Shown here: piece by piece, positions 2,598 to 46,856 of the stretch | How positions within the stretch are numbered: the stretch's first letter is position 1 | Layout of the letters: each line of letters begins with the position of its first letter | Virus record (IMG/VR): IMGVR_UViG_3300035698_035366 | Location: 124,001-188,000 of that record | DNA: 64,000 nucleotides | Reading direction: 5' to 3' (one strand) | Translations under genes and position numbers: made by a program | The notes under the pieces: model-generated | Database searches by the model: none | What the model was told of the DNA's origin: nothing | Seen by the model: the letters and a program-made list of their open reading frames with translations, nothing else

Positions 2598-3425
2598 ATG
2601 AAAAAAACATTTATTGAACATTTGATAGAGAGCGATCGGGAATACAGCTACCGAATTAAATCGGTTGTTGATTTTGACGATACCCAAATGGAGAAATTGG
2701 AGAGATTGGTTCAAAAATATGAACTACGTGATATGGAATCTCCAAGAAAGACTATTATTCAAGATCATCCACTTGATTTCCCAGATGTGAACCATGCAGA
2801 AGTTTATATTATTGATATTGTCACTGGTGTACCAGTATCATCATATATATTACAACAAGAAATCCGAGAGAATTTGAAAGTACCGGAAAAGTTTATTGTT
2901 GTTCGTTCTGAGAATGATCCTCTAGAGATTGAAACAGAAAAAATGCTTGCAATGAAAGATATGCGTGATGAAGCTGAAAAGAAAGGCCTTGAACGAGATG
3001 CATTACTTTCAACTTCAAGTGTTTATGTTGAAGATGAAAACTCAGTTCCTGGTGAAGAAATGTATGGGGATATATATAATAAGAGATTTCTAGATACTCT
3101 TGCCCAAATATCAGCAACTCGTTCCCCAGAATTCATTGAAAACAAAGGCACGGGGATTTTCTCGTGGTTGAACAATGAAGTTGACGATGTTCCTGAAATT
3201 ATGACAGACGATAGTTTCAACAGTGGTAAAGAATACGAATATGCTCCAAAACCAACACCGTGGTGGAAAGCTTCCAGCGTTGATCACAGGTTACATGATG
3301 ATTTAAGTTTGGGAACAGCCGGAAACTTTGATGACGATTCAAAATTATATCATCAAAAATATAAAAAGATTGATGGAGAAGAAGTCCATATGATCCGTAA
3401 AACAGAGGGAATTCAAGATGACTAA
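2598..3425 (+). CDS. Hypothetical late/virion protein
   Basis: 275-aa ORF after GCTAAATA (2556). N-terminus MKKTFIEHLIES resembles the E-site leaders of the other head proteins. Confidence 0.6.
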   Translation: MKKTFIEHLIESDREYSYRIKSVVDFDDTQMEKLERLVQKYELRDMESPRKTIIQDHPLDFPDVNHAEVYIIDIVTGVPVSSYILQQEIRENLKVPEKFIVVRSENDPLEIETEKMLAMKDMRDEAEKKGLERDALLSTSSVYVEDENSVPGEEMYGDIYNKRFLDTLAQISATRSPEFIENKGTGIFSWLNNEVDDVPEIMTDDSFNSGKEYEYAPKPTPWWKASSVDHRLHDDLSLGTAGNFDDDSKLYHQKYKKIDGEEVHMIRKTEGIQDD

Positions 3426-5472
3426 CGAATTGGATAGAATGATTAAACTAGCGGGCATTCGTCTTGCAGAAGATAATATGACCACTGACGGATTTGATTT
3501 CTCAGGAATTTCAAAACTCGTTGATGAAAATAAAATCAATACATTACCATATGGTGATCAAAAAGAAATTTTTAGACTGTCAAGTATGATTGGTGATGGT
3601 GGTATCCATGATGCAGTTTCCAGAGCGAAGGCGATGATACAGAAAGATCCATCGATGAGTTCAACTATGCAGAGTATATTACAAGACCTAATTTCAAATA
3701 GTGGTGTCAGTGATGTACAGGAAAATCTTAGTCCAATCCATGGTTCTCCTGAGAATCCAGATGAGGATCTTTATCCAGATCAGGAAGTTCACCAACATGA
3801 TCACGATTGGAACAATAACGATTCGTCCGAAGCAACAGATGATGATGGGCATCTAGTAGAAGATGAAGGTTCGTTAACATTTAAACTTTCAAGAAAGAAA
3901 ACTGAAGACGGGGAATTTGTAGTTAAAGCATACAAAAATGGCAAATATTATGAGCCAGCAAGCTACTATACAGATGATTGGGAAGATGCAGTTGGAACTA
4001 AAGCTGATATGGAGAAACGTGAAGGCATCAAGGAAGATGGTGACATGGGCGAAGCGCGTGAATTACCAGATGCAGTTAAAAATAATTTTGAATATGATCC
4101 AGATGCAGAAGCAACCGAAATTAGCTTTGATACAGAAGAACCTATTTCGGAAGAAAATACAACAGAAGGTGTTGTCAAACTAATATCAATGCTAGACGGT
4201 GATAGAAAAACTGCTAAAGAAATTGTAAAGCAATTGGATGAATGGGTTAACTTTGCTGGTGAAGATTGGTCTTCTGATGATTTTGTTGATGAACTCATGA
4301 ATGCATTTCCTGACCTAAGTGAAGAGATGGCTACTGAAATTCTTGAAATGCATGAAATGGGTGAAATTGGCGTCTCGGCATCATCATATAATGAATTTGG
4401 TGAATCAATCAAAGAAGACGTTCGTCAAGACGTTCCTGTTCTTGAATTCGATTCAACAGGTGATGCTTATGATGCGTGCCAGTATGATGACAATATAAAG
4501 AATGGTGATGTACTTTTAATTCCATCCGAAGGTGTGGTTGGAATAGCTGGTACGTGGCCCGTGGCAGTCACAATAGAAAATGGTAATCTCCATTCAGCAA
4601 AGGATGGTGAGTTATCACTTTACTTGGATGAACAAAATATGGGAGCCGGATTAGATAAAGCTGTTGCAACTGCAAATGATCACGGCTTTGAAATTGTTCC
4701 TGAAATGGCACAAGAAATAACTGAAGGATTTATGGATGATCTTCGTTCAGCAGCCAGTGATTTAGAAGGTGAGCTTGTTGTTATGCGTGAAACCCCAGAT
4801 GAAAGCGAATATGGTGCGGTAGAGGCCTTGGTTCGGGATATGGCACAAGCATATCATGTCGATGAAGATAGTTTATCTAGAACATTTGAAGATGTTTATG
4901 GTGTACATCCAGAAGAATATATGATGCAAACCGAATCGATGAACGAAATTAATGAAGATTGGGGCTCATCAGATTGGTATCCAATCATACAAAATATCGA
5001 TCAGGCAATTGAAAGAGACGGTGTATCACCTGAATCTATTGAAAATGCGGCACGCGATAGTGCAGAAATGTATTACGACCACATGGGATATGAATCAGTA
5101 GATGATGCAGTAGATCCAATTATCAATGGTTGGATGCGCATGTCAAAGAAAGGTAAACAGCTTTCTGCTATGTTCGCACCAAAAGAGACTATGGATGAAC
5201 ATGAAAACGGTGAATACGATTTTGGTCACCGTCAGATGGGTTACAAAGATTATCAACAGGATGTTTTTGATTATAGAGGACGAGCAGAAACTTCTGGCTC
5301 CAAACTTCGAGTTGTTAATAATTATGGCGATAACCCAATGATTGAAGAAGACCCTAGAAATGATAATGGTATTCGTGGAAAGCGGTTTTATGAAAATCAA
5401 GATCCTATTGCTGTTCGTGAAGCTCAATATGCTAAAGAATTCCGAGCGTTTTTAAAAGAAGGAAAGAAATAA
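3418..5472 (+). CDS. Very acidic multi-module protein, putative internal head polyprotein
   Basis: 684 aa, D/E-rich, many (I/L/V/M)-x-E sites (LAE, LVE, IKE, ITE, INE, LKE), RMIKLAGI N-terminal motif. Confidence 0.6.
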   Translation: MTNELDRMIKLAGIRLAEDNMTTDGFDFSGISKLVDENKINTLPYGDQKEIFRLSSMIGDGGIHDAVSRAKAMIQKDPSMSSTMQSILQDLISNSGVSDVQENLSPIHGSPENPDEDLYPDQEVHQHDHDWNNNDSSEATDDDGHLVEDEGSLTFKLSRKKTEDGEFVVKAYKNGKYYEPASYYTDDWEDAVGTKADMEKREGIKEDGDMGEARELPDAVKNNFEYDPDAEATEISFDTEEPISEENTTEGVVKLISMLDGDRKTAKEIVKQLDEWVNFAGEDWSSDDFVDELMNAFPDLSEEMATEILEMHEMGEIGVSASSYNEFGESIKEDVRQDVPVLEFDSTGDAYDACQYDDNIKNGDVLLIPSEGVVGIAGTWPVAVTIENGNLHSAKDGELSLYLDEQNMGAGLDKAVATANDHGFEIVPEMAQEITEGFMDDLRSAASDLEGELVVMRETPDESEYGAVEALVRDMAQAYHVDEDSLSRTFEDVYGVHPEEYMMQTESMNEINEDWGSSDWYPIIQNIDQAIERDGVSPESIENAARDSAEMYYDHMGYESVDDAVDPIINGWMRMSKKGKQLSAMFAPKETMDEHENGEYDFGHRQMGYKDYQQDVFDYRGRAETSGSKLRVVNNYGDNPMIEEDPRNDNGIRGKRFYENQDPIAVREAQYAKEFRAFLKEGKK

Positions 5473-5520
5473 CCCTTAATTTTAGTGAGCAGCCTTATCA
5501 ATCTTAAAAAGGAAATTAAA

Positions 5521-7533: not shown

Positions 7534-9849
7534 ATGGCTGATAAGTTTGGTCTCTTGGCAGAAAGAATATTTAGTATTTTCAAAGGAACGGGGCACACCC
7601 TTAGACTCTTCGATGAGCAGGGAAACCAAACAATTGATCCTGAAAATGCTCGGCATTTCTTTGCTGTTGAAGACCGTATTATGGTTACTTTGCATCAAGA
7701 CAATGCGGATAACAATGAATTAACGTTAATGATTCCGGAAAAGAATGATAAGGGTGATGTCCGCCATTTTGCCGATATGATTAGATCTTTAAGACGGTCA
7801 GCACAACACTTTAATATTATGTTTACAGTTAGAAAATTTGGGCATGAGATTACACCGAAAGATGTGATCCATAAAATAAAAGAATCATGGAGTAATGACA
7901 TGGAAATCGCAGAACAGATGAATCCAAAGATGACGGGAACCTCTCGCACAAGTCATCAAAAGTGGAATGAAGCAAGACTAATCGTCAAGCACTCAAAAGT
8001 TGTAAATGAAGAACAACGGGGCGCTCGATCCAGAAATATTAGTCGGCTTTTTGTAGAAACCGCTGAAGGCGAACGTTTCTTGTTCCCTACAAAGAACTTA
8101 CAAGCTGCGAGAGCATGGTGTCGTCATCTGGGTGCGGGGGGTGTTGCTAATGACATAGTTAGTGAGCATATCAAAAGCCTAAGCAATGAAATGGAAACAT
8201 TGAAGGAATTTTCCGCACATATTTTCCGCAATAGGACAACTTTGGAAGAATCAGCACTTGCTGTTCGTTCATCTGCCCGCACTAGAATTGACGAGATCCG
8301 TAATGAGCTAGGTCGTTTTATGACTAAGAGAGCATACTTTACGGTTGCTGAAGAAATCGAAAGTTCTGAAACCAGCGGTGATACACTTGTCGAATCACAC
8401 ACCGATTTATCTGAGCGTTTAGAATGGTTGTCAGACACGTTAGCTATTGCAGAAGATCATGATTTATATGGTAAATTGTCTTCTTTAGTTGAATTTACCG
8501 AACCAGCTGTTGCTGACGAAGAACCAATGGAAGGACAATTTACTCCGGACGATGTTGCCCAAGCATATGAATTCCGTGGTGCAGATAATGCAGCCCGTGA
8601 CCCGGAAGGCACATTTGATTGGGAAGCAATCAATAAAGATACTCCTCCGGAGCACAAAGATCACCTGAAACCACCTGCCGTAGAACGTTTATATTTTGAA
8701 GAAGCTGCGGCCCTACTTAATACAAATGATTTTACGTTTTTTGACAAATACACCGATGACGACGCAAACAAACCAGATGAATGGACCCCTCGTGGAAAAT
8801 TAGCTTGGCGTTTAGCTTCAATCGCAAAGAGACTTGATCCAAAGGTTAAGGGACAATTGGTTCTTTCAAATATTCTTTCCTATGTGGCAGATAAGATGCA
8901 AGAAGGCGCAAGACCAAATCCACAAGCACAACGCATCGCTGGTCACTTCATTACAAATATTGCTCCAACAATTCATGAATCAATCAGCGTTCGTTTAGCA
9001 CAAATTGAAGAAAGTGTAAAACTTGGAGAATCATGGCTTGAAGATTTGGAATCAGCGGTTAATGATTTAGAAGCAGAGCTCGAAGCATTCATTGACAATG
9101 ACAGTGAATATGGCGCAGTTGACCCATTAATATACGATATGGCACAAGCCTATGGTGTAGATGTAGCAAGCTTGGCCAATGCATTCCACGACATGAAAGG
9201 TATACCACCAGAAGACTTCGTGTTTCGCGGTCGATCATTTGGTGAAAGCCGTGAACTAGACGAATGGTTCGAAGGATTTGATCCATTGAGAATTATTAAG
9301 GAATCTTCAAAAAAACTAACCGATGATATTCCAGTAATTCCGGGTGACATGGGAAAGGATTTTGAGGATGAAATTACAACCGATGGTTATGACCATGGTG
9401 AAGACGCGCAAAACATTATAAACTCAAACGACGAAATCGATACAGAGATGTATGAAGAAGTTGAATTGGCTAACGGTATGAAAGTTAAGTTTACTCCGGA
9501 TTATGCTGGTAATGACGCCGGTGAGGTTTTCACTTTAACGGGATGGGATGGCAAGCGTGGTCGAGTTGAAGATTCTCAAGGTCGTGGTTGGGGGGTTAGT
9601 GGTTATCAAATCGAGCCAGCTTTTTCAAGTCAAGACGACGATTACGATGATGATTCAATCCCAACGCAGGGATCATCCCGTGATCTGAGAGATATTAATG
9701 AAATTGCAGAATGGGCAGCTGATGCAGTTACCGATGGTAGAATGAATTTTGATGAAGCCGTTGAAGATTATTACCAAGACAATTTCGAAGAGAGTGGAAT
9801 TATGATTGGTAAATTCGAACAGATGGTTCAGGCACATTTGGATAGCTAA
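7534..9849 (+). CDS. Large hypothetical virion/head-associated protein with acidic modular C-terminal half
   Basis: 771-aa ORF after CATAAATA (7496). Many x-x-E sites (IKES, LVES, IHES, LGES, FGES). Shares a module with 3418..5472. Confidence 0.6.
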   Translation: MADKFGLLAERIFSIFKGTGHTLRLFDEQGNQTIDPENARHFFAVEDRIMVTLHQDNADNNELTLMIPEKNDKGDVRHFADMIRSLRRSAQHFNIMFTVRKFGHEITPKDVIHKIKESWSNDMEIAEQMNPKMTGTSRTSHQKWNEARLIVKHSKVVNEEQRGARSRNISRLFVETAEGERFLFPTKNLQAARAWCRHLGAGGVANDIVSEHIKSLSNEMETLKEFSAHIFRNRTTLEESALAVRSSARTRIDEIRNELGRFMTKRAYFTVAEEIESSETSGDTLVESHTDLSERLEWLSDTLAIAEDHDLYGKLSSLVEFTEPAVADEEPMEGQFTPDDVAQAYEFRGADNAARDPEGTFDWEAINKDTPPEHKDHLKPPAVERLYFEEAAALLNTNDFTFFDKYTDDDANKPDEWTPRGKLAWRLASIAKRLDPKVKGQLVLSNILSYVADKMQEGARPNPQAQRIAGHFITNIAPTIHESISVRLAQIEESVKLGESWLEDLESAVNDLEAELEAFIDNDSEYGAVDPLIYDMAQAYGVDVASLANAFHDMKGIPPEDFVFRGRSFGESRELDEWFEGFDPLRIIKESSKKLTDDIPVIPGDMGKDFEDEITTDGYDHGEDAQNIINSNDEIDTEMYEEVELANGMKVKFTPDYAGNDAGEVFTLTGWDGKRGRVEDSQGRGWGVSGYQIEPAFSSQDDDYDDDSIPTQGSSRDLRDINEIAEWAADAVTDGRMNFDEAVEDYYQDNFEESGIMIGKFEQMVQAHLDS

Positions 9850-9852
9850 GTC

Positions 9853-10437
9853 ATGCGCTTAGTTGAATTCGAAGATCCTGGAGTTTATGTTGCGTTTAAA
9901 CTTGATTTATCAAGTGCTACGCAATTATCAGATTTTGTTGAAAACGAGTTGGACATGAAGCCAATTCCTAAAGATTTAATGCATGTCACAGTGGCGTCAT
10001 TCAAAACTGGAACCATTAATGAGTCGACCTTTCCAAAAATAAATTTCCCAATTGAAATTGATATTGCGGATTCATTTAGTACCTTTGGTTTCTTTACACT
10101 TCCATTTAAAGGGATTTATAATGCTGCATATATCAATCTAGAAAATAACCGAGAACTAATGATTGCTAGGGGTAACATTTTAGATTGGATGGACGATTGC
10201 GGAATATCAACAAAAACACCAGGTGGTAGATTTAGAGCCAGATGGCGGGGATGGACCCCGCATGTTTCTGTTACTTTTCAGGATACAGAAAAAAATAAGC
10301 TTCCTTGGGAAGGGGGTAATATGATTAAAGTCAAAAACTTTTTAAGAGGGACTGTGGATCTACCAATTTCAACTATAAAAGTGTCAGATATAATTCTAAC
10401 GCCGCATGATAAGAATTGGGGAGCAGATTTAGTTTAA
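9853..10437 (+). CDS. 2H phosphoesterase, Acb1 (T4 gp57B)-like
   Basis: Two HxT/S motifs (MHVTV, PHVSV). GVYVAFK near the N-terminus and a W-x-x-D-L C-terminus parallel T4 57B as I recall it. Confidence 0.75.
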   Translation: MRLVEFEDPGVYVAFKLDLSSATQLSDFVENELDMKPIPKDLMHVTVASFKTGTINESTFPKINFPIEIDIADSFSTFGFFTLPFKGIYNAAYINLENNRELMIARGNILDWMDDCGISTKTPGGRFRARWRGWTPHVSVTFQDTEKNKLPWEGGNMIKVKNFLRGTVDLPISTIKVSDIILTPHDKNWGADLV

Positions 10438-19062: not shown

Positions 19063-19081
19063 AGCTAAAGGAGATGTATTT

Positions 19082-19975: not shown

Positions 19976-20076
19976 AATTAGTTTCTACAAAAATTATTGA
20001 AAAACCAGAAACCGTATATAATTTAGAAATCGAAAATGATCATAATTATATTGTTGAAGGAGCAGTTGTTTCAAAT
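19972..20076 (+). mobile_element. Split intein C fragment (IntC, 35 aa)
   Basis: Block F VYNLEI…HNY and block G VSN followed by +1 Cys (20077-20079). Confidence 0.9.
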
Positions 20077-33754: not shown

Positions 33755-33952
33755 ATGTCTAACGTATCCATTATGAGATCGATAATCAACGATTTGGCTA
33801 ATGAAAAAAGAATTTCGTTAATCGAAAATCCCGGCGTTACTATGCCAGACCAACGGTCATTACGTGATCAATTGTGGGATTTGCATTCTCTAGCAAATCG
33901 AAATAAATTATACGATGCTGCTGATTGGTTGAAAAGGTATTTGGAGAAATAA
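33755..33952 (+). CDS. Small hypothetical protein
   Basis: 65 aa, RBS AAGGAG. Confidence 0.6.
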   Translation: MSNVSIMRSIINDLANEKRISLIENPGVTMPDQRSLRDQLWDLHSLANRNKLYDAADWLKRYLEK

Positions 33953-35956: not shown

Positions 35957-36903
35957 AGAGAGAGATGCGTAAATTGTTGGATCATATTAATGATGGTTAT
36001 AATAATACGACACCAAAGAAAAAGTTGAATGAGAGTCGTATTGTGATGGAAGCTGATAATGATTTCACAGATGCTCTACGCCAGAAGATCGTTAATGACG
36101 ATGATTATAAAAATGGTGACGTACATCAAGCAATTTTGAATGTCGCATATGATGATTGGCAAAATAATGATAAAATGCAAGGTTATAGAGATATGATTGA
36201 ACATACCCATGTTACTTATGGTCCATTGGCTGCATTTGCAGTTCTTGCAGGAAAGCACAACCAACAAGTTGAGAATGGTGGCCATGCGCAATATTTCGAT
36301 AATGGTTATGCTGGTGGTGATGGGCCGGGTGGTCGGAAAGATGAAAGTGATACAGAATTGCATCAAATGCTCATTGAATTCGCCAATCAATATAATATTT
36401 CATCCTTATCCGGTGGTTCAGATGCTTTAGAAATTTATAATGAATGGAAACCAAGTCAATCAGATTGTGATGAATGCGGCGGTAATGGACACTACGAAGA
36501 AGACTGTCCTGACTGTCATGGTCAAGGTATGGATGATGAAGGAGAAACGTGTGAATACTGTGATGGTAGCGGAGTTGATCAAGGCGAATGTAGTCAATGC
36601 TGGGGAAGTGGTGAAGGTGAAGTTACCGGAGAAGCTGATTATTTAGATAGTGCATGGTATAAACTTAACGGACCATACATGAAAGCATTAAACAGTTTCT
36701 TTGCCAGCAAGCTAAAATCCAATACAACAGAAGAAAGCTTTAACCATGTAGAAGAAACAGCTACTTCCGGTGGATCAAGTGCTGGTGGTATCGCGTCTGT
36801 ACCTGGATCTTTGGGTGCGGGATTCGGCGGAGACCCAAAAGCAAGCATTTATCACAAAAAAGAAAAGAAAAACCGGAAAAAGCCTACCATAATTAAGAGA
36901 TAA
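35941..36903 (+). CDS. Protein with DMP19/DUF4375-like domain and inserted DnaJ-type zinc finger
   Basis: QQVENGGHAQYFDN plus four CxxCxGxG repeats. Confidence 0.6.
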   Translation: MVNQIKREMRKLLDHINDGYNNTTPKKKLNESRIVMEADNDFTDALRQKIVNDDDYKNGDVHQAILNVAYDDWQNNDKMQGYRDMIEHTHVTYGPLAAFAVLAGKHNQQVENGGHAQYFDNGYAGGDGPGGRKDESDTELHQMLIEFANQYNISSLSGGSDALEIYNEWKPSQSDCDECGGNGHYEEDCPDCHGQGMDDEGETCEYCDGSGVDQGECSQCWGSGEGEVTGEADYLDSAWYKLNGPYMKALNSFFASKLKSNTTEESFNHVEETATSGGSSAGGIASVPGSLGAGFGGDPKASIYHKKEKKNRKKPTIIKR

Positions 36904-36994: not shown

Positions 36995-37447
36995 ATGGTA
37001 ACTAAAGTAAACGGTTTTAGCCAGACAGGAGTAGAAGCTCTTACTGGTAATCTAGACTTCTTCACAGTTCGCACACTTGAGCCAATCCTAACAGATGGCC
37101 AGGATGAAGGAACGCCAGTATCTGGTGAAGTAACACAGGGCGACGCAACCACACAGGCTGCCCTAGACCTCCTAATCGAAACAATTTCACAGCGTGCTCA
37201 GCCAGTAATTCTTTCCAACGTTGCTGTTTCTCGTGAAGCGGTTGCCGGTATCACTGACCTTCCAGCAGTTGCCGACGATGGTGATACAAATGATACAGTT
37301 TATGTATTCAAGTTTGCAATCGAGCATACAGAAGCATGGGATGCAGACCTACTAGCAGAAGCACTTGACTCTGCAAACGGTGTATTCGTATTCCGTACAC
37401 CAACAACAAACAACAACGTTGCAATCGTTCGTAACGCAACTCTATAA
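36995..37447 (+). CDS. Abundant structural protein candidate (head decoration-like)
   Basis: TATAAATA at 36927, RBS GGAG, biased high-expression codon usage, own terminator. Confidence 0.6.
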   Translation: MVTKVNGFSQTGVEALTGNLDFFTVRTLEPILTDGQDEGTPVSGEVTQGDATTQAALDLLIETISQRAQPVILSNVAVSREAVAGITDLPAVADDGDTNDTVYVFKFAIEHTEAWDADLLAEALDSANGVFVFRTPTTNNNVAIVRNATL

Positions 37448-37583: not shown

Positions 37584-38555
37584 ATGTTAACAACTAAAAA
37601 CTTTAGAAATAAACTTATTCGAGAAGCAATTGAATCTTTGCTTGAAACAGGATTTAATTTGAAAGAATATGATATCGAAGAGCTTAAACGCGGGATCCTG
37701 AAGAATTTCGCCAGGTCGACGGAAGCGCGTTTTGATGTGGATAGTATAGATGATGCGACCAATATGCGTGGTATGTTTACTAGGCTTGCTAAAAAATCAT
37801 TTGCAGATCAAGAAATTCCACTTGAATCAACCAATGAAGATACTCAATTAGGACCAGATGGCCGCGGTGCATGGAAAGTTACTTATGTTTCTCCAGATAA
37901 GAAAGACATCGGTAATGATAATTTTGAAACTGAACGTGAAGCCAGACGATTTGCTCGCGCTTTAAAACGTAAAGGATATAACGATGTCCACGTTGAATTA
38001 GGTCAACTTGGTGAGGCCTACCCTGATGATTTTGACTCCAAAGCCGCTGATGCTTATTGGGGTGACAATGAAGAAGAATTCGAAAAGATGGCTGAAGCTT
38101 TAAAGTATGAAATTGATAATGTTGACCTAGAAGGGCATTCTAAAGATCCAGAAGATTATGAATATAATATGGAACATCTACTTGATGCGTTAGTTGGCGG
38201 TTTAAAATCCCGAGCAGAAGATGAAAATGCATTCCATGACATGTACAAAGATCTTTACAACTATGGTGAGAAAATTCTTGCTCCCAAGTTAAAAAAATAT
38301 ATGGGAATGGTTGATGAGGGTTATCATGTAGTTCCGGGAATTAATACAGAAAGATATCAAGAACGCGCCGGCTTAGAAGGACCATTCGGAACTAGAAGTG
38401 GGAAGGTTGTTTATTATGACCCGAAGGAAGGAAAATATTATGATTCGGATAGTGATATGTATTTGAGTCATGATGAATACGAGGCACTCAATTCAAATAG
38501 AAACGTTCATGAGAATGCACTTGTTAAACTTAGAAGATTATCAGGCATAAAGTAA
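37584..38555 (+). CDS. Acidic multi-module putative internal head protein
   Basis: LLE, TNE, LGE, VDE and VHE sites; ends KLRRLSGIK; after GCTAAATA (37522). Confidence 0.6.
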   Translation: MLTTKNFRNKLIREAIESLLETGFNLKEYDIEELKRGILKNFARSTEARFDVDSIDDATNMRGMFTRLAKKSFADQEIPLESTNEDTQLGPDGRGAWKVTYVSPDKKDIGNDNFETEREARRFARALKRKGYNDVHVELGQLGEAYPDDFDSKAADAYWGDNEEEFEKMAEALKYEIDNVDLEGHSKDPEDYEYNMEHLLDALVGGLKSRAEDENAFHDMYKDLYNYGEKILAPKLKKYMGMVDEGYHVVPGINTERYQERAGLEGPFGTRSGKVVYYDPKEGKYYDSDSDMYLSHDEYEALNSNRNVHENALVKLRRLSGIK

Positions 38556-38596: not shown

Positions 38597-38905
38597 ATGA
38601 CACTTGACGAATTATTTGAAGATGATGATTTCGAGAAAGAACTTGGGGAATCAGTAAAACGTATTTGGGCGAGATCTGGTAAGAAGGTTGTTCGTAAATT
38701 CAGGTGTACTGCTGGCCCAAAACAAGGTCGTATTGTTGCATCCGCCGCCGCATGTGGACGCGCACCTGATCCTAAAAAGCGTATGACGTTGAAAAAAACA
38801 AAAGCTGCTAAGGGAAAGCGTATGTCCCGTAAGGCCTTAAAGACAAAAAAGAGAAATCCAGCTTCAATTAGAGTTCAAAGACTTAATAAACAGGCAGGTA
38901 AGTAA
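38597..38905 (+). CDS. Small basic protein with acidic leader (prohead core-like)
   Basis: MTLDELFE…LGE|S, then K/R-rich body with two Cys. Confidence 0.6.
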   Translation: MTLDELFEDDDFEKELGESVKRIWARSGKKVVRKFRCTAGPKQGRIVASAAACGRAPDPKKRMTLKKTKAAKGKRMSRKALKTKKRNPASIRVQRLNKQAGK

Positions 38906-39558
38906 TGACTGAAAAAACTCTAACTGAGGTTTTGCGAGACTATCAAAATTCAATTGAACGGAGCCTAGCTGGTGCAATTACCGGTAAAAAAGATGACGAG
39001 CTTGATAATTCGGATATCGAATCAGCCCAACAAATAGCAGCGAAAACAACAGATTCTTCGTATATGGCACTCGCAAATGCATTAGATATCGATGATGCGA
39101 AACAAGTACAAGATATAGTACATAGTATTAATCCGACTATAAAATTTGTAGAAATGAGGGAAACTAACTTGTTAGATCGAGACATGCTGGAATCTGCTGG
39201 TTTCACTTATGCTGCAATAGTACCACAAGAGTTGACTAAAAGGATTTCAGATTATTTGGATGAAAACGAAATTGATTATATGGATGATGGTACAGGAAAC
39301 TACCAGTTAAAACTCGGTGACCGAGAATCAGCATACAAAATTGGGCGTGGATTAAACAAAATGCTTACAGCAAGCCATATAGTTAGAGATTCAAAAGAAG
39401 AAGAAAACAAAACCAAGAAAAAAATTGTCAAAAGACATCGAACAGGGCTCGCTGGTATACAACAAACGGGTTCTGGTCCACACACCGCAGCTAAATATAC
39501 TAAACAAGATAGACGTGGTGGAAAGCACCGCAAAGAATTTAATTCGGGAGACGAATGA
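38905..39558 (+). CDS. Hypothetical head-cluster protein
   Basis: 217-aa ORF translationally coupled to its neighbours. Confidence 0.55.
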   Translation: MTEKTLTEVLRDYQNSIERSLAGAITGKKDDELDNSDIESAQQIAAKTTDSSYMALANALDIDDAKQVQDIVHSINPTIKFVEMRETNLLDRDMLESAGFTYAAIVPQELTKRISDYLDENEIDYMDDGTGNYQLKLGDRESAYKIGRGLNKMLTASHIVRDSKEEENKTKKKIVKRHRTGLAGIQQTGSGPHTAAKYTKQDRRGGKHRKEFNSGDE

Positions 39559-39559: not shown

Positions 39560-40369
39560 ATGACAAAAGATAATAAATTAGATGAGCAGGTTCTTGGCTT
39601 CGCAAGTGTTGGTCGTCTACAGAAACTAGCAGGAATCCACAGTAATCTTCCGATTGTTAAACAAATCGATGAAGAAGATGATAAAAAACCTGACGAAGAT
39701 GGTGATGGTGTTCCTGATTGGGCCGATAAGAAGTCTGGAAAAGATGACAAGGAAGCCGTTAACGAAGATGAGTTTGATGGAATTGATGACTTCGATGATG
39801 ATCCGGTAATCGACCCAATGGGCGATAGCGGAATGCCTGGCGAATTGGGAGATGAACCAGTTGAAGAACCATTTGATCCAGAAATGGATGATATGGCACC
39901 AGAGCTCGACGATATGCCAGGAGATGACATGGGTCCTGATATGGACGATGACATGGTTTCAATGGATGATCTACCATCAGTAGAACCAGAACCAATGATG
40001 CCAGATTCAAGAATGGATATGGGAATGGGATCTGATATGGTTGGTGACGTTCGTTCAGAAATGGAAAGCAATTTAGACAGTTTATTGTCTTCTGCACCAA
40101 ACTTGAAGATTGCAGATTTCAAGGATGTTTTACACCACGCTGAAGAAGTTGTTGCGCAGATCCGTGCAATGGGTGCGCAGTACCTCAAGGAAGGTCGAGT
40201 AACAAGGCGTAATGCAAACAAAACGCTCCGTGAAGGATCAAATGCTTCTGGTTCAGGTTTCCGCAAGTCACTGTTTGAAGTTAATACAATTGTTAGTGAT
40301 AAAAAATATTCTAATAAAACCCACCCAACTCACCGATTGAAGCGTGGCAAAACAGCCGCAACCAAATAA
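39560..40369 (+). CDS. Acidic low-complexity protein (scaffold-like)
   Basis: LDE|Q…RLQKLAGI, then a D/M/P-rich tract. Probable ATG at 39560. Confidence 0.55.
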   Translation: MTKDNKLDEQVLGFASVGRLQKLAGIHSNLPIVKQIDEEDDKKPDEDGDGVPDWADKKSGKDDKEAVNEDEFDGIDDFDDDPVIDPMGDSGMPGELGDEPVEEPFDPEMDDMAPELDDMPGDDMGPDMDDDMVSMDDLPSVEPEPMMPDSRMDMGMGSDMVGDVRSEMESNLDSLLSSAPNLKIADFKDVLHHAEEVVAQIRAMGAQYLKEGRVTRRNANKTLREGSNASGSGFRKSLFEVNTIVSDKKYSNKTHPTHRLKRGKTAATK

Positions 40370-40599
40370 TGCGTTGGATAGAAGTCCTTGGTGGATTACG
40401 AATGCCAATCAACAACGAGGAATCCAAGCTCGTTGATAAGATTGACGAATCCAAAGAATTTGATAAGGAAAAACTGTCAGAAAGAGAGCAAGAATTGGCT
40501 CGCAATCTCGTATCACGTGGAGTTTTAAATAGATTTTCCAATGATGATAGTATAGTATATTATACAGTTAATAAAATTCAACCAGCCTGGAGGGAATGA
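40369..40599 (+). CDS. Small hypothetical protein (winged-helix-like pattern)
   Basis: LSEREQELARNLVSRGVL. Confidence 0.6.
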   Translation: MRWIEVLGGLRMPINNEESKLVDKIDESKEFDKEKLSEREQELARNLVSRGVLNRFSNDDSIVYYTVNKIQPAWRE

Positions 40600-41288
40600 T
40601 GGTTTCCACTGAAGAAAAGAATGAAATGAAGAGACTACGTGCTATCTTGGATTCAGGATTTGACGGATCAGTTCATTCGGATCCAGAAATACCATTCACG
40701 GAAACACCAAATACCGATGGTAAGATAGCCCCTCCAGCGTTATCATCGGCTAGAGATCCACAAATGGCTAAATTTTTGGCCATTACTGAAGGCTTTACCG
40801 ATACAGCAGAAAAATCTGCACAGTCATTACAAGAAAGCAATGACCCTGAAATACGGGAAGCACTCAATACTAATCACAGCGATGATAGTATTAGTATCGG
40901 AAATTGGAAGATTAAAATAGTTGAAAGGCCATCATATTCAAAGAAAAATATTAAGACATATGATATTATCAATAATTTGAACAACCAAGTAATAGTTGAG
41001 GGGTTGTATATTTATGAAGCCGCTCGCGGTCTTGTTCGACTACTAAACAAAGGTATTCCTTTAAACCAAACATCTCCACAACATATCATCCAGCTTGAAG
41101 CAAAATATGTCGCATTGCGTGATGATTTATATCGAGCAATGAAAAAACGCATTAAACTACGCGAAGAAGGTCACCTGAGCCAGTCAGGCATTTATAAGGC
41201 CCGAGCCGAAGATTATCAAGAGAAGGCATTTCTTACTAAAAAACAGATCATTGAGGCTTCAAACAACGCTCTGCGCCTACTTAGATAA
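40596..41288 (+). CDS. Hypothetical head-cluster protein
   Basis: 230-aa ORF with LQES site. Confidence 0.55.
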   Translation: MMVSTEEKNEMKRLRAILDSGFDGSVHSDPEIPFTETPNTDGKIAPPALSSARDPQMAKFLAITEGFTDTAEKSAQSLQESNDPEIREALNTNHSDDSISIGNWKIKIVERPSYSKKNIKTYDIINNLNNQVIVEGLYIYEAARGLVRLLNKGIPLNQTSPQHIIQLEAKYVALRDDLYRAMKKRIKLREEGHLSQSGIYKARAEDYQEKAFLTKKQIIEASNNALRLLR

Positions 41289-41353: not shown

Positions 41354-42643
41354 ATGGTTATTGATCAATTAGAATCTGGCACAGATCTTAATAAAATTTT
41401 AAACCTTCTGCGTAAACGCTTTGGTGTTGACTTGCGATTGCATGAATCAACCAAAGATGAAGTGGAACAAATTCTAGAACATTACGAGAATGTTAAGCGA
41501 ACAATTGCCTTAGCAGAATCTTTCAATACGACAATCAGTCATCCTGAATATGCAAAAGCAATTTTGATATGTGAGGCTTGCCGATTGTTTCTACATGAGA
41601 TTGCTCCTGCACGCAAGAACGCAAAGGTTCGCACTAAGAAGCAACAGAAAGCAGAAAAAACTATAGATGGCTCCGTTACTGAAGACATTTCTCCAGAATT
41701 ACAGATTGGTAAAGATTTTGAAGATGCCGGTACATGTTTTGATGGAGAAGATCATACACGGGATTACCGAGCAGATCGTAATCCAGCAAATCCGAAATCA
41801 TTTTCGTTTGATTATACAAAAGATGATTCAGCTGTTTTTGTCAAGGACGAATCACCTGAAACTTTACCAATTGATACAGAGAAATCATTTGAGGTTGTTT
41901 CGAAAGATGACGAATCGGGTGTTGTTGCTCGATATTCAGTACATAGAAACTTAAACCCAGATGATTATGCGGACGATCGAGATCCACGATCAATAACACC
42001 TGAACCAGAATCATCTAATCCAATGGATGCATTACGTGCAAGGTCCGACGCCGACAATCCAGAAACGAAGACGGGATTGGATCCAAGTCTTGAAACCGGT
42101 ATGACTATAGAAAAACCAAAATTTGTTGGCAGTGGAATACGGAAGAATATGAAAAAGGGATCATCAAATCCTACTCAACGAGAAATACCAGATCCAAATG
42201 ATCTACAAGCCGGAAACAAACAATTTTATAATAACGGTCACGTAAATGAAGCATCATTGGCATTGGCTTGGATTAACAAAATTAATGATAAAAAATATTA
42301 TAATAAAATCTTAGAAGCTGCTGATGCAGTCGCCACAGAACGAGATAAAGATATTATTCATATATTGAATGCTGTTGAAACTTATGGTCATCGTTATGCA
42401 AATTCAAAAAATGATGAGTATACTTTGGCTATGGTTGAAGCACTTAATATGCTAGGTGACGTTTCGGATCTTAATATTATAATGGAGGCACGATCCTCCG
42501 GCGATAAACATCGAAAATTATTCAATAAATTACTAAATAACTGTAGACAATTTAACCTGACTGAGGGACAGAAAAAGCGTTTTGTGTATGCTGCTCATAA
42601 TGCCTTGTTCCAAACAAATTTGGTTAAACATAATATTTTATAA
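41354..42643 (+). CDS. Hypothetical head-cluster protein
   Basis: 429-aa ORF after CATAAATA (41315); LHES, LAES, VTE, VNE and IME sites. Confidence 0.55.
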   Translation: MVIDQLESGTDLNKILNLLRKRFGVDLRLHESTKDEVEQILEHYENVKRTIALAESFNTTISHPEYAKAILICEACRLFLHEIAPARKNAKVRTKKQQKAEKTIDGSVTEDISPELQIGKDFEDAGTCFDGEDHTRDYRADRNPANPKSFSFDYTKDDSAVFVKDESPETLPIDTEKSFEVVSKDDESGVVARYSVHRNLNPDDYADDRDPRSITPEPESSNPMDALRARSDADNPETKTGLDPSLETGMTIEKPKFVGSGIRKNMKKGSSNPTQREIPDPNDLQAGNKQFYNNGHVNEASLALAWINKINDKKYYNKILEAADAVATERDKDIIHILNAVETYGHRYANSKNDEYTLAMVEALNMLGDVSDLNIIMEARSSGDKHRKLFNKLLNNCRQFNLTEGQKKRFVYAAHNALFQTNLVKHNIL

Positions 42644-42661: not shown

Positions 42662-44329
42662 ATGAACAAGAAATCACTTGCCGCAGCGAAACTGAAGGAA
42701 ATGACGCGTCTCGCTCAAAAGCGACAATCTCTTCTAGAAGAAAAAAGATTGCGTGATAATCCTGCATTGGGAATGTCATTACTGCTTGAAGGCGATTTAG
42801 AACAAGCCGAGATTGCTCTTGCAATCCAGTCAATGGAAGCCGATATCCAGAGCATGGCAGAAAAGGTTGCAAAAATGTCAGTTGAGGAGGTTATGCCACT
42901 GACTGACCGCATCCGTGAACAGTTCGGTACAGATAAAGCTGATGCATTTGATGCCGCCGCCAATGAAACACTAACCACTTTATTAGATGCAGTTAAGGAC
43001 ACACGTGAAGCACTTTCCCAGCAGAGTCTAATCATTCAGGGAAAAGCCGAAGCCAGTGAATTTTCCGATATGGGAAAGGATGATGGTGGTGAAATGGATT
43101 TAGATGGTGCTGATATGGATTTGGGAGATGGGGAAGAGGATTCAAGCGGAGACAGCGAAATTGATGATTTATTTAATGGGTCTGAAGCTGCATCAGGACC
43201 TGAGGAAGAGCCATTAGGTCGTGCCAAGAAAGAATCGGCACGCAACTCAAAGAAAGTTCTTGAGTCTAAAAAAAAAATCTACGAAGATGAGAAGCTAACC
43301 TCTGCATTAGAAGAAATCAGTCAAGCTGAAACCGTGTTCGAGCAAGAACTTATTGCTGATCGTCACGGTTTCCTTCTTGAAGAACTTACCGAATTTTTAG
43401 AATCAAACGATGCTGCGGAAGCCGAAGAACTCTTGCGTAAAATTAGGACGCCTGGTTCAGCTATTCGTGAAGCCCTTGGAATTGAAGAGGGTGTTCTTGG
43501 TGATCTAGCATTAACAGCCGCAAAATGGATCCCTAGCCCAATAGCACCAATTGCTAGGGCTGCTGATGCACTCGGTGCCTTTGACGATAATGACGAAAAC
43601 GCTGATGATCCAAAGACCGGCGAAGATGCCGCTCAAGCAGCCAAAGATGAAAAAATTAAAAAAATGCCAATGGTTAAGCAAGCCATACAAAAGGTATCAA
43701 ATAAGGTTGCTAAGAATCCAGCCGTTAAAAAAGTAGCTGATGCACTTGGTGTCGATCCAGAATCCGCTGCTGAATTGGCAACAGGATTAACTGACTCAAT
43801 TGAGTATTCATCACCAATCCTTGAACACGCTATTGTTGAAATGGTAGATGATTCCGAGATGCGTGAATCAGAAGCAATTGATCTCCTAAAAAATAAAATG
43901 TCGGCGGCCCGTGCAGGAAAATCAATTGCAGAAACTGAAGCATTTGATGGAGGAATGACATTATCTACTCCTCGCAGTTTAATGAAGCAACTCACCAAAA
44001 AGTATGGATCACCAGATGGGTGGCAGATTGCTGAAAACGATGAGGGTGGTTATTACGTTATTTCTGAGCGTATTCCAGAAACACTCCGTGCAAAAGAAAT
44101 TGAAAAGACACTTGAGTCACTTGATGCCGAGTCTGCAAACCTTCGAGAAGAATACGGTGATTTGGAAGAAGATTTTCAGCTACCACAAGAAATCCGCGCA
44201 ACCAAATTGAGAGATCAACTTAAAGAACTTGCACAAGGTTATCACCACCCAGTTGCGCGTTGGTGTACAATGGACGAGGCCCGTTCAATTGTTGCACTAG
44301 GTCGCCGCTGGTTTGGAAAAGAAGCCTAA
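42662..44329 (+). CDS. Putative prohead scaffold/core protein
   Basis: Acidic coiled coil with repeated VLES/FLES/LLE/IAE sites; RBS AAGGAG. Confidence 0.55.
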   Translation: MNKKSLAAAKLKEMTRLAQKRQSLLEEKRLRDNPALGMSLLLEGDLEQAEIALAIQSMEADIQSMAEKVAKMSVEEVMPLTDRIREQFGTDKADAFDAAANETLTTLLDAVKDTREALSQQSLIIQGKAEASEFSDMGKDDGGEMDLDGADMDLGDGEEDSSGDSEIDDLFNGSEAASGPEEEPLGRAKKESARNSKKVLESKKKIYEDEKLTSALEEISQAETVFEQELIADRHGFLLEELTEFLESNDAAEAEELLRKIRTPGSAIREALGIEEGVLGDLALTAAKWIPSPIAPIARAADALGAFDDNDENADDPKTGEDAAQAAKDEKIKKMPMVKQAIQKVSNKVAKNPAVKKVADALGVDPESAAELATGLTDSIEYSSPILEHAIVEMVDDSEMRESEAIDLLKNKMSAARAGKSIAETEAFDGGMTLSTPRSLMKQLTKKYGSPDGWQIAENDEGGYYVISERIPETLRAKEIEKTLESLDAESANLREEYGDLEEDFQLPQEIRATKLRDQLKELAQGYHHPVARWCTMDEARSIVALGRRWFGKEA

Positions 44330-44352: not shown

Positions 44353-44784
44353 ATGATGCGCTTAAAAGAGTTATTTGAAAATTTGGATACCATTATATAT
44401 TATTCGCCGGAGGTTGATGATCTTACGGAAGAGTCTGAAACTTTGGAAGACATAGAGCGATCAATAATTGATTCGTTAGTTTATGCACGAGCACAAAATC
44501 TTGAACATATTTATCTACACCATATTGAAGATAGAGTTAGAAAACAAGGTATGGAAATACCAAAAGATTTCCTAATGGATTTTTTAATGTCTCGACCTGA
44601 TATTGAAAAGATTGCTCCTATCGATGCAAAACATCACGGTGACGAAGTTTTCGAAATTGTATTTACTGACCAGGATGCTGATGTGCATCAAAGAGTTGAT
44701 CAAGATAAAGAAGCAATGGATCAAGAGATGATCGATAGAAAAGCCAAAGCCCAAGCAAAGAAAAATGTTAAGGATAAAGAATAA
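44353..44784 (+). CDS. Hypothetical head-cluster protein
   Basis: MMRLKELFE leader; RBS AAGGAG. Confidence 0.6.
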   Translation: MMRLKELFENLDTIIYYSPEVDDLTEESETLEDIERSIIDSLVYARAQNLEHIYLHHIEDRVRKQGMEIPKDFLMDFLMSRPDIEKIAPIDAKHHGDEVFEIVFTDQDADVHQRVDQDKEAMDQEMIDRKAKAQAKKNVKDKE

Positions 44785-45116
44785 TGAGTGAAGTATTTCC
44801 AACAGCATCTGAATTGCGTACACGCAAGACAAAGAGCCGAACAATACAGGAAGAAATTTCTGCTATTCAACTCGGTATTTTAACCGCCGACGAAGCGGGT
44901 GCAATCGAAACAACATTAGCTAATACTCCGTTTACAATACCAGGTGATGCTGATGCGGAATTTAGGTATGAAGTATTTAAAAAAACTGAAACAGATCGAT
45001 TGGTTTCATTGGAACTGTCTGAGGTTGAAAATTATTTTTCGACCAGAGGGTATAGCATAGTAAAATTAACAAATGGTGATACCGGTAACACCTTTTTATG
45101 GAGTATAAAATGGTAA
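44784..45116 (+). CDS. Hypothetical protein
   Basis: 110-aa coupled ORF. Confidence 0.6.
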   Translation: MSEVFPTASELRTRKTKSRTIQEEISAIQLGILTADEAGAIETTLANTPFTIPGDADAEFRYEVFKKTETDRLVSLELSEVENYFSTRGYSIVKLTNGDTGNTFLWSIKW

Positions 45117-46363
45117 ATAATTTTAAGAAGCTTGTTAGGGAAAGCTTGGATATCGTCGAATCAGGCAATAAACCATTGATGGAATTTAGTGCAATAAGGA
45201 CCATTGATTGGGTTAAAAAGAACGTTGATAATTTTGACTCAGTTGATGAGATCATTGATGCTTTAAAAAACAAAGTAACAAATCCAAAGCTACTTAAAGA
45301 TCCAAAAGCAATGGACTATTTTGTAAAGAATATTTTTGAACCAGTAGCAACAAAAGCTATGAAAAATAAGGATCAATCCAAGGAAGTTAACGAGTCAGAC
45401 AACCCAGATGATTGGATCGATATTTTTGAAAATCTAAAGAAGGGTGATCGCCTACAATTAGCATGGAAAGGAGTTATGTCTGGTGGACCGGATACCCCAA
45501 TTACAATGGTTGCTGTTCGTAAAAGCTATTCTAAAAAATATAATGTTACAAGATGGGTTGTAGTTAAAGAAGGTGCAACACCAACACCAAAAAAATCAAA
45601 TAAAATGAATACATACTGCCTATACCAAAGAGGTGAGGGGAAACCTATCACTATGGCACATGGTGATATGGGAATTATGTTGAAATATATGAGTAAGGAT
45701 CTTGGTGAATCCATGGATCTTTCAGAAGATGCAATGGATGATGCAATGCATGATCTAGACAATGAAGGCATTGATGCATTGAATGATATCGCCGCTGATT
45801 ATAATCTTGATCCAGTAGTTGTTGCAAGCCAGTATCGTCAATGGCAAGAGCGTGGAGAGGCTTCTAGAGTTGCTTCTAAAGTACACCAGTCTGAATTGGA
45901 TAGAGCTGAGGCAGAAATGCGTGCTGTCACTAAAGCAAACCGATCAGCCGCCGCCAAGAAAGCCGCAGCTAATCGCGCACCATATTATGTACAGTCTGAA
46001 CGATATTATGACGAAAGGGTTCCAGTAACACATGATGATATACAAGAACTCGGACATTATATGATGGGAGCCGCCGGCGAATCATTTCCGGACGGTGACC
46101 CAAACAATCAATTAATGCGTTTCTTCCGGCAGAAAGGTTGGGATTCAAGTAATGCATTTGAAAAACTTGTTCCAGTCGCCGCTAGAAAGGTATTACAGAC
46201 AAACTCCTATAATGAGTATCTAGCTGATATGTGGGATGATTTCTATGGTGACGCTAAATATGATGCCGAACATCCAATAAAGAATCCTGATGGAAGTGAA
46301 TATTATGATACTTCTAGACTAGATATGCTTGGCGGAGCCAATGCACATAATCCTTGGAGATAA
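45110..46363 (+). CDS. Multi-module putative internal head protein
   Basis: VRES, IVES, LME, VNES, LGES and LSE sites separating distinct modules. Confidence 0.55.
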   Translation: MVNNFKKLVRESLDIVESGNKPLMEFSAIRTIDWVKKNVDNFDSVDEIIDALKNKVTNPKLLKDPKAMDYFVKNIFEPVATKAMKNKDQSKEVNESDNPDDWIDIFENLKKGDRLQLAWKGVMSGGPDTPITMVAVRKSYSKKYNVTRWVVVKEGATPTPKKSNKMNTYCLYQRGEGKPITMAHGDMGIMLKYMSKDLGESMDLSEDAMDDAMHDLDNEGIDALNDIAADYNLDPVVVASQYRQWQERGEASRVASKVHQSELDRAEAEMRAVTKANRSAAAKKAAANRAPYYVQSERYYDERVPVTHDDIQELGHYMMGAAGESFPDGDPNNQLMRFFRQKGWDSSNAFEKLVPVAARKVLQTNSYNEYLADMWDDFYGDAKYDAEHPIKNPDGSEYYDTSRLDMLGGANAHNPWR

Positions 46364-46409
46364 TAAATGCCTAGGATTAATAAAACTTATATAGGATGAA
46401 TAATTTATT

Positions 46410-46856
46410 ATGAGAGCACGAGAATTTTTGTTTGAATTATTTTTTAATGGGTTTGAGAACAGAAATAGGAAATATGTTGAACTGTTTATTAATCCAACTA
46501 GTAAAGAATTGCAGCAATTAGAAAGTCATGATACAATAAGAGCATTTTTAACAGAAGATGATTGTATAGCATGGGATTCAAATTTGGCATTGCACTATGA
46601 AGTTTCGGAAAATATAAATTTAGATAAAAACACAGTATCAATTTTACTGTATTATACCCCATCTGAACCAAACATATTAATATTAGTCACTGATTTTACG
46701 AAAAAAAGCCAATGGTTCCATAATCCTAATTTAGCAGATTGGATTAAAGATCATCCTTATATACAATCACTCGCCGATGAAGGTTATATCGATATATCTT
46801 ATTTCGATGAAGATATATATGGTGATTGGGAAAACCTAGAAGATGAGAGCTCATAA
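46410..46856 (+). CDS. Hypothetical protein with MRAREFLFE leader
   Basis: 148-aa ORF. Confidence 0.6.
   Translation: MRAREFLFELFFNGFENRNRKYVELFINPTSKELQQLESHDTIRAFLTEDDCIAWDSNLALHYEVSENINLDKNTVSILLYYTPSEPNILILVTDFTKKSQWFHNPNLADWIKDHPYIQSLADEGYIDISYFDEDIYGDWENLEDESS

Follow-up and report, generated by a model that had tools for sequence, protein, structure and literature searches.

Short leader peptides and hydrophobic-x-Glu sites in putative head proteins of a jumbo phage of the RaK2 and Atu_ph07 group

The subject of this study is a cluster of phage genes at 32.9-46.9 kb of a window of 64,000 nucleotides, which comprises bases 124001-188000 of the 296 kb virus record IMGVR_UViG_3300035698_035366. 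Many of the encoded proteins begin with a short leader peptide and contain sites of the form hydrophobic-x-Glu, the cleavage rule of the T4 prohead protease gp21. We consider it likely that the proteins of this cluster belong to the phage head, as its cargo and core proteins, and that w2598, w3418, w7534 and probably w9853 do so too (open reading frames (ORFs) of the window are named by w and their start position; gp and BF numbers, L005-L007 and L123 denote proteins or loci of relatives). An original prediction, made from the sequence alone, had described the range 2598-46856 as a large set of acidic, head-packaged polyproteins cut into many small effector domains. That range was too wide, as the roughly 22 kb at 10.6-32.9 kb hold mostly replication and other non-cargo genes, including those for gp32, UvsX, helicases, an endonuclease and DnaB, besides numerous unannotated ORFs outside the proposed set; synteny suggests a primase as well.

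The nearest relatives by the terminase large subunit (TerL) are Sinorhizobium phage Phosso (56%), Atu_ph07 (51%), PA5oct (50%) and RaK2 (47%), and the genome contains T4-like core genes for a tail tube, a gp4-like head completion protein, TerL, gp32, UvsX, a DnaB-like helicase and a ribonucleotide reductase (RNR). Judged by this TerL affinity and these core genes, the record is a T4-related jumbo phage of the RaK2/PA5oct/Atu_ph07 group. A prohead protease of the gp21 family (PF03420, Peptidase_S77; 91 bits, E 1e-26) is encoded outside the window at genome 76537-76986 and is directly followed by genes for a scaffold-like protein (genome 77131-78378) and the major capsid protein (genome 78405-79640). 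The capsid proteins of the present phage and of Atu_ph07 have PLME↓[TN]ATAG in common (↓ marks a predicted cut), at about the position of the T4 gp23 cut, and at the sequence level both scaffold and capsid protein bear hydrophobic-x-Glu sites as the cargo candidates do.

Leader peptides and their association with virion proteins

The leaders quoted in the original prediction were all confirmed to lie at real first-ATG starts with a Shine-Dalgarno site (w2598, w33513, w35183, w38597, w44353, w46410 and, on the minus strand, w58013). Strict leader A consists of Met, an optional second Met, [RK], a hydrophobic residue, any residue, [EDQ] and a hydrophobic residue. It begins 13 proteins genome-wide, against 0.9 expected from its internal frequency (Poisson 2e-11), and these 13 are not paralogues of each other in an all-against-all BLASTP comparison; a relaxed form fits four further proteins, among them w38597, w46410 and w58013. 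In leader B, five to nine residues precede M-R-x-hydrophobic-hydrophobic-[E/D]. The pattern MR.[ILFM][ILVM] occurs nine times at residues 2-15 and five times over all internal positions, and is thus about 28-fold denser near the N-terminus. Leader codons vary while the peptide stays constant, so conservation acts at the protein level. A plain N-terminal hydrophobic-x-Glu is uninformative, because 114 of 445 ORFs have one in their first 14 residues and N-termini are not enriched for it genome-wide. Among 80 related metagenomic loci, leader A starts 129 of 1274 distinct ORFs (2.7 expected). A second hydrophobic-x-Glu, its Glu in position 8 or 9, is present in 70 of 154 distinct leaders.

The same leaders (MRLYELFDE; …NMR[KT][IL]LE↓[SA]) are found in a second gene group outside the window, at genome 98783-103093 and 107784-109569 on the minus strand, which had no Pfam or PHROG match and is probably further head cargo. 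There, a 636-aa protein (genome 101183-103093, minus strand) contains an internal copy of the leader found on both neighbouring proteins. Leader A (MRLSEL) is also at the start of a full-length M3 oligopeptidase (Pfam E 7.8e-125) at genome 114432-116462 (window -9568 to -7538); it could clear peptides freed in head maturation, or the N-terminal match could be chance.

The cluster is flanked by a DnaB-like helicase (w31447) and an exonuclease (w46925). The same interval comprises gp290-297 in Serratia phage BF, with six annotated virion structural proteins, and gp043-050 in Atu_ph07. For the latter phage, 131 virion proteins were reported by electrospray ionization tandem mass spectrometry (ESI-MS/MS; MS hereafter), of which 29 are encoded by coding sequences (CDS) 31-76 (PMC6102473). 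We rebuilt the Atu_ph07 genome from its IMG/VR copy and mapped 138 of 140 transcribed entries of the Atu_ph07 Table S5 to ORFs by molecular weight and gene order. Leader-A ORFs were MS-detected in 23 of 25 cases, against 112 of 830 other ORFs (odds ratio 74, p 1.5e-17); counted by independent sequence families, 11 of 13 leader families were detected (p 1.6e-8).

Homologues point in the same direction for individual window proteins, five of which match PHROG families labelled virion structural protein. w2598 is 32% identical to Atu_ph07 gp113, itself MS-detected in virions, and the N-terminal 114 aa of w7534 are 39% identical to gp108. Homologues of the pair w40369 and w40599 (PHROG 16215 and PHROG 16179) are Atu_ph07 gp046 (MS-detected in virions) with BF gp294, and Atu_ph07 gp045 with BF gp295. 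w44353 had no BLASTP match to other phages; it lies next after the gp44 homologue, in the place taken by Atu_ph07 gp043 (MRLIDLLE↓S) and BF gp297 (MRFSQITE↓D), both virion proteins. w36995, which is 34% identical to gp050 (a virion protein by MS) and the positional counterpart of BF gp292, is probably an ordinary structural protein. For the homologues, presence in virions is documented by PHROG families, BF annotation, Atu_ph07 MS and the leader association; for the proteins of the present phage it is predicted.

The Atu_ph07 data also bear on cutting. Table S5 lists, as a coarse measure, the gel band in which each protein peaks. gp44 (86 kDa, the w42662 homologue) peaks in band 10 with proteins of about 20 kDa, gp108 (98 kDa, the w7534 homologue) in the lowest band, gp53 (87 kDa) in band 9 and gp42 (35 kDa) in band 11. 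gp594 (24 kDa), which contains two repeats, each after I-x-E, peaks in the lowest band. Such small-band peaks of large proteins, coarse as they are, suggest cutting into modules, the process that predicts this pattern, and w7534 in particular is likely to be cut into small pieces.

Whole-virion MS gives no location, and the Atu_ph07 authors tie the many uncharacterized virion proteins of CDS 31-76 to the unusual, whisker-bearing morphology of phages of this kind. The cluster proteins might thus be external parts of the virion, such as the hair-like fibres or whiskers on Atu_ph07 and 121Q, with an N-terminal motif that serves for docking independently of any protease. We regard this as quite improbable: the leader motif ends in a protease cut motif, large homologues run as small fragments, and the same sites are found in the scaffold and in the capsid propeptide. 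In addition, ten cluster proteins had no Pfam match above cut-off, in a scan that included no search aimed at fibre-like or tandem repeats.

Cut sites, module borders and gene fusions

Internal sites, which had been read as [ILVM]-x-E, are weak in this plain form (1.42 times the shuffled count in the cluster and 1.15 times in the rest of the genome) and stand out only when the residue after the cut (P1') is restricted. The refined site, a hydrophobic-x-Glu followed by S, G, N, Q, A or T, occurs 67 times in the cluster, against 33.0 ± 5.3 in shuffled sequences, and none of 500 shuffles reaches 67; outside the cluster it is not enriched (523 against 501 ± 21). Ser occupies P1' in 16% of cluster sites, compared with 6% in the background. 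The bias towards a small or polar P1' in the cluster extends to the scaffold and the acidic core protein but is not seen in other proteins. Hydrophobic-x-Glu sites number about 70 per 1000 residues in the scaffold, and w3418 has 27 [ILVM]-x-E against 16.3 expected (z 3.1). The label 'acidic' suits about 12 of 19 cluster proteins, w38597 (+21) and w35183 (+16) being strongly basic.

Module borders were compared in the w42662 family. w42662 consists of a leader helix, an LLE↓G site (Glu43, codon 42788-42790), a helical-hairpin module (residues 44 to about 130), an acidic disordered linker and variable C-terminal modules, with KKE↓S (Glu191) and VLE↓S (Glu201) between the linker and the C-terminal modules. 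In all of about 57 distinct relatives, [L/I/V]-x-E followed by G, N, S or Q stands directly before the hairpin module, which can start as early as residue 9-10, after a T4-like leader of ten residues, or as late as about residue 620. The P3 residue of this conserved site is Leu in 37, Ile in 10 and Val in 3 of 50 sequences. In an alignment of 36 sequences with 15% mean identity, only Met1, Glu43, two Ala and one Arg are invariant, and Glu191 of KKE↓S is nearly so. The AlphaFold model of w42662 is all-helical, with a confident hairpin and a disordered acidic linker (residues 139-187) that ends at the Glu191 and Glu201 sites. The N-terminus of w41354 tentatively resembles that of a protein from the metagenomic relative L005 with the w42662 module at its C-terminus, in a weak BLASTP match found in L005 only (E 0.006, 24% over 55 residues).

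These counts and alignments also address whether the sites simply reflect the chance composition of Glu- and Leu-rich helical proteins, with the N-terminal motif as a feature of translation initiation or of the mRNA. The raw hydrophobic-x-Glu excess is indeed present genome-wide, and a quarter of all ORFs have such a motif near the N-terminus. Composition-preserving shuffles, however, never reach the refined count, there is no such P1' bias elsewhere, divergent alignments show the site as invariant, the peptide is kept while its codons vary, the leader predicts virion presence, and the major late structural proteins are without it. The compositional explanation is therefore largely refuted, and we give it next to no probability.

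Genes with these sites have been joined and split. The last 48 residues of w35941 form a C-module that follows VEE↓T (Glu codon 36754-36756). It is present in four of eight homologues, each time after [VI]EE↓T, and is encoded separately, by a small gene with a leader to itself, in BF (gp291) and several metagenomic relatives. This module, like BF gp291, begins TATSGGSSAGG, and the predicted mature N-terminus of the capsid protein reads TATAGSSSAGN, both after x-x-E; the likeness could mean that the module mimics the capsid N-arm, or that the protease recognizes a longer stretch of sequence. In w45110, a Gln codon (CAA, 45626-45628) stands in place of a TAA stop, the sole change at the junction compared with a close relative that has two adjacent genes (168 aa and 236 aa), in which spacer and Shine-Dalgarno site are both intact. 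Translation now runs through the old spacer and its ribosome-binding site, and an internal ATG at 45653 keeps its own leader with GE↓S and SE↓D sites. Since the old ribosome-binding site and ATG persist within the ORF, a start at 45653 might additionally yield the second module as a protein by itself. A stand-alone copy of this C-module elsewhere has the same leader as the N-terminus of w45110. w3418 and w7534 have an 85-residue module in common. The cases of w35941, w45110, the protein at genome 101183 (minus strand) and w3418/w7534 show, as far as sequence comparison reaches, that conservation attaches to the unit of leader and site, and that polyproteins come about when such units are joined.

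In the mechanism that we propose, each gene or module would start with a short amphipathic leader of the form M-[R/K]-hydrophobic-x-[E/D]-hydrophobic-hydrophobic-(x)-E, or x5-9-M-R-x-hydrophobic-hydrophobic-[E/D], which would act like the capsid-targeting sequence of T4 and draw the protein into the scaffold core of the prohead. The gp21-type serine protease would then cut after hydrophobic-x-Glu, preferring a small or polar next residue, and so remove leaders and separate modules, a step that we infer from the conserved sites and the gel behaviour of homologues. The signal for targeting and cutting appears, from the comparison of relatives, to travel with each module, so that neighbouring cargo genes could fuse or split without loss of function, and this mobility would account for the polyprotein look of the set. 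The freed pieces may stay with the DNA and, by analogy, be ejected into the host, or may leave the head as scaffold debris. What the original prediction said of head-packaged, protease-cut polyproteins is backed by the S77 protease, the synteny with virion proteins and the leader association in Atu_ph07, and also by the invariance of [L/I/V]-x-E at module borders, the low bands of large homologues and the fusion and fission at sites; head packaging and protease processing appear, indirectly, to be well supported by comparative and borrowed proteomic evidence. A wider proposal is more doubtful, and we make it tentatively: throughout the clade, including RaK2, Atu_ph07 and metagenomic relatives, leader and cut site may form a portable cassette that serves as a general address label for the capsid interior, with cargo genes gained, fused by stop-codon loss, split and shuffled at will.

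Functions, scaffold likeness and gene content

Two domains were recognized in the set. The w35941 family matches DMP19 (PF14300), a family named after a DNA-mimic protein, in six of eight members (best E 1e-5), with a DnaJ-type zinc ribbon inserted. w9853 has a weak Pfam match to Acb1, and an Atlas feature and structure matches (TM 0.6-0.7) link it to 2',3'-cyclic phosphodiesterase and Acb1 families (LigT/Acb1-like); some of its relatives in other phages are fused to portal proteins, and it is a candidate packaged enzyme. The homologous cluster of Atu_ph07 includes an InPase domain in gp042, and gp053, a leader-bearing virion protein encoded nearby, has a Zeta-toxin-like kinase. The ten leader proteins scanned elsewhere in the genome gave almost nothing in Pfam, the M3 oligopeptidase excepted, and PHROG matches were likewise sparse. 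The AlphaFold model of w45110 is confident only at residues 290-417 and had no match by VIA-align (best Z 6.9) or by Foldseek against viral models (no E ≤ 0.001); an Atlas search with w45110 also gave none. The word-index protein search spans 0.55-1.75 times the query length, so that its few matches for w9853, w35941 and w45110 are uninformative on longer or shorter kin. Alt-like ADP-ribosyltransferase (ART) activity for the Atu_ph07 paralogues gp53-62 ('YRGM') is not claimed, as Pfam gave no ART match. For the 'many small effector domains' of the original prediction, the two recognized domains are the evidence at hand; the better fit is a mixture in which core proteins and DNA-associated proteins are accompanied by a few enzymes.

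A motif of the form hydrophobic-[RKQ]-x-L-[A/S]-G-[I/L/R] (e.g. RLQKLAGIK) makes up the scaffold C-terminal tail here and in Atu_ph07. It recurs at the C-terminus of w37584, at residues 20-26 of w39560 and 8-14 of w3418, and in the protein at genome 101183-103093 (minus strand), giving 5 matches in 88,677 residues against about 0.1 expected in a rough hand estimate from residue frequencies. The motif may be a second mode of docking to the prohead, and copies of the scaffold tail and of the capsid mature N-arm may serve as alternative addresses.

The set might instead consist mostly of prohead core or scaffold-like parts that are degraded and expelled before DNA packaging, rather than of cargo delivered to the host. 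The w42662 module, modelled as a long helical hairpin with a disordered acidic linker, is scaffold-like, several members copy the scaffold tail, many are very acidic, as is the core protein at genome 75459, and few enzyme domains were detected; the w42662 module and several very acidic proteins do look like core or scaffold material. As an account of the whole set we nevertheless find this unlikely. Homologues are present in mature virions with good peptide coverage, and the set includes a basic DNA-binding-like protein, a DMP19-like domain and a 2H phosphoesterase, to which Atu_ph07 adds the Zeta-toxin-like kinase and InPase. Loss from the head may hold for some members and is not exclusive of the assignment as head cargo and core proteins.

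Several points weigh against that assignment. The gel-band evidence is coarse, and degradation could explain it; Atu_ph07 gp112, the positional counterpart of w3418, is not fragmented in the gel (no homology between the two was detected by BLASTP). The leader expression was widened partly after sight of Atu_ph07 N-termini, and a single paralogue family supplies 13 of the Atu_ph07 leader hits. Among the leader-A N-termini, 54 of 154 are without a second hydrophobic-x-Glu within 16 residues, and their cut position is thus uncertain. One of the two scan patterns for w42662 relatives included the cut site; thirteen distinct relatives with only the site-free pattern still carry it, and off-pattern variants keep the Glu. 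In the AlphaFold model, Glu43 of w42662 is part of a helix, at a point where confidence dips. Most cargo candidates are without recognizable function in Pfam, PHROG and structure searches, and a loose [CAT]TAAATA sequence upstream of cluster genes also precedes many others and is not cluster-specific.

The genes of the proposed set and those next to them are listed in Table 1. In homologues of w35183 from L006 and L007, hydrophobic-x-E↓G is kept at the same place as the leader site. Orthologues of w38597 in L005-L007 retain leader and basic body, which makes this protein a candidate DNA-associated internal protein. The ORF listed at 39425 has its true start at 39560. A relative of w46410 in L123 begins MRASEFLTE↓F. 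w58013 had no Pfam or PHROG match, and its membership in the cargo set is uncertain.

Table 1. Genes of the window considered here, with window coordinates, strand and main features
Gene	Position	Strand	Protein and sites	Family or likeness
w2598	2598-3425	+	275 aa; 11-residue leader ending LIE↓S	PHROG 14802 'virion structural protein'
w3418	3418-5472	+	684 aa; net -97; N-terminal MIKLAGI, then LAE↓D	N-terminus scaffold-tail-like
w7534	7534-9849	+	771 aa; acidic	PHROG 13484 'virion structural protein'
w9853	9853-10437	+	194 aa; leader A (MRLVEF)	2H phosphoesterase
w32924	32924-33529	+	acidic; 7 refined sites; late-promoter-like CTAAATA upstream	
w33513	33513-33752	+		virion-protein family, PHROG 11854; homologue of BF gp290, annotated virion protein
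two genes	33755-33952, 33955-35181	+	MR-x-hydrophobic-hydrophobic-D type leaders, with start sites	
w35183	35183-35956	+	257 aa; basic; 11-residue leader ending LLE↓S	
w35941	35941-36903	+	320 aa; leader; C-module 36757-36900	DMP19-like domain with zinc ribbon
w36995	36995-37447	+	150 aa; without leader; TATAAATA upstream	virion-protein family
w37584	37584-38555	+	323 aa; acidic; C-terminus KLRRLSGIK	PHROG 13298; C-terminus copies scaffold C-terminal tail
w38597	38597-38905	+	102 aa; acidic leader MTLDELFE; second site LGE↓S; body +21	
two genes	38905-39558, 39560-40369	+	second: net -33; RLQKLAGI at residues 20-26	
w40369	from 40369	+	76 aa; leader A (MRWIEV)	virion-protein family
w40599	40599-41288	+	229 aa	
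w41354	41354-42643	+	429 aa; 8 refined sites	
w42662	42662-44329	+	555 aa; net -48	PHROG 14154
w44353	from 44353	+	143 aa; leader A MMRLKELFE↓N	
w44784	44784-45116	+	110 aa; without leader	
w45110	45110-46363	+	417 aa	read-through fusion of two cargo genes
w46410	46410-46856	+	148 aa; acidic; relaxed leader A MRAREFLFE↓L	
w58013	58013-60697	-	894 aa; relaxed leader (MILNELYVDLNE↓G)	

The T4 late promoter TATAAATA occurs 6 times, with 7.9 expected, and thus shows no enrichment. The exonuclease gene that follows the cluster has a host-type TTGACA-17-TTAATA promoter (46857-46924), and several cluster genes have [C/A]TAAATA instead; this contrast hints at different timing, with [C/A]TAAATA too common to decide. 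A DNA helicase is split over 18034-19062 and 19972-20808 with a TnsA-like endonuclease ORF (19082-19975) in between, so that the span 18034-20808 looks like a mobile-element insertion. Elsewhere in the genome, a 707-aa ORF on the minus strand (87486-89609) has an N-terminus (…NIGIIAHVDAGKTTTTE…) that reads, by eye only, as an EF-G-type translational GTPase, and two small ORFs at 82027-82360, some 2.4 kb downstream of the gene for the capsid protein, contain stretches of about 30 residues that are 64-68% identical to parts of that protein. A Megablast search of GenBank phages with the cluster gave no match, a tRNA scan found no tRNA, and no alternative genetic code had to be assumed. IMG/VR tags the record as a provirus; its gene content is instead that of a lytic-type jumbo myovirus. 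Identical window proteins are also present on a contig of 407,795 bases, and the 296 kb record is therefore probably incomplete.

Comparison with known systems and wider meaning

The system described here is classical T4 biology in its principle, extended rather than of a new kind. As in T4, a protease of the S77 family, a hydrophobic-x-Glu rule and short N-terminal propeptides on unrelated proteins are combined, and the T4 leader MKTYQEFIAE resembles the leaders found here. Exchange of the P1 Glu for Asp in T4 prevents cleavage while targeting is retained. The T4-like set also includes a small basic protein besides enzymes, w38597 recalling the basic internal proteins of T4. In T4, the N-terminal 10 residues of IPIII are enough to target it to the head, and propeptides of 7 and 65 residues are removed from Alt and gp23, respectively (PMC9026906); the capsid-protein propeptide predicted here has about 62 residues, compared with 65 in T4. 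In contrast to IPI-III and Alt of T4, there are about 20 genes in the window and more clusters elsewhere in the genome, the leader consensus is M-[RK]-hydrophobic-x-E-hydrophobic-hydrophobic-x-E or of the MR-x-LL-E type, and multi-module proteins carry internal leaders and cut sites. The genes lie between replicative helicase and exonuclease, away from the head genes, and their packaging and cutting are predicted.

In published accounts of phiKZ, 201phi2-1 and SPN3US, many head proteins, among them ejection and inner-body proteins, are described as cut after x-x-Glu by a gp21-like protease (gp175 or gp245), with removal of propeptides (PMC5694885, PMC7411985, PMC10052503). The likeness of these phages to the present one lies in giant size, a large internal protein mass and gp21-like processing. 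Their cleavage motif has a small residue at P3 (S/A/G-x-E), whereas P3 of the conserved site here is L, I or V. Almost no paralogy was detected among the candidates by all-against-all BLASTP, unlike the paralogous inner-body families of those phages, and the lineage is a different one, with TerL nearest to Phosso, PA5oct, Atu_ph07 and RaK2.

Polyvalent proteins combine several conflict-related domains in one polypeptide and are predicted to be delivered together with the DNA (Iyer et al. 2017, PMC5512222). A possible likeness lies, in the present phage, in the DMP19-like domain with zinc ribbon of w35941, the one case recognized here, and, in Atu_ph07, in the InPase (gp042) and Zeta-toxin-like kinase (gp053). 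In contrast to polyvalent proteins, no MuF or portal anchor was present among the Pfam matches of the scanned cluster proteins; the modules are short, mostly unrecognized and separated by head-protease sites, and targeting is apparently achieved by the leader peptide. Within the clade, cleavage of the capsid protein was merely suspected in the RaK2 paper and processing was not analysed in the papers on PA5oct and Atu_ph07; our literature search found no paper that links a capsid-targeting sequence with any of these phages.

Most jumbo-phage genes lack an assigned function, and the virions hold at least 100 proteins of unplaced role. A sequence rule for head-loaded, processed proteins would place a considerable fraction of these genes in a single functional class straight from metagenomes, and would point to the first proteins delivered or used at entry, such as the candidate anti-defence DMP19-like protein and the 2H phosphoesterase. 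Such a rule would also explain how sets of cargo evolve by fusion and fission. If the cassette proves to be clade-wide, the packaged proteome of uncultured giant phages would be predictable from the leader alone, which would also be a ready tag for loading foreign proteins.

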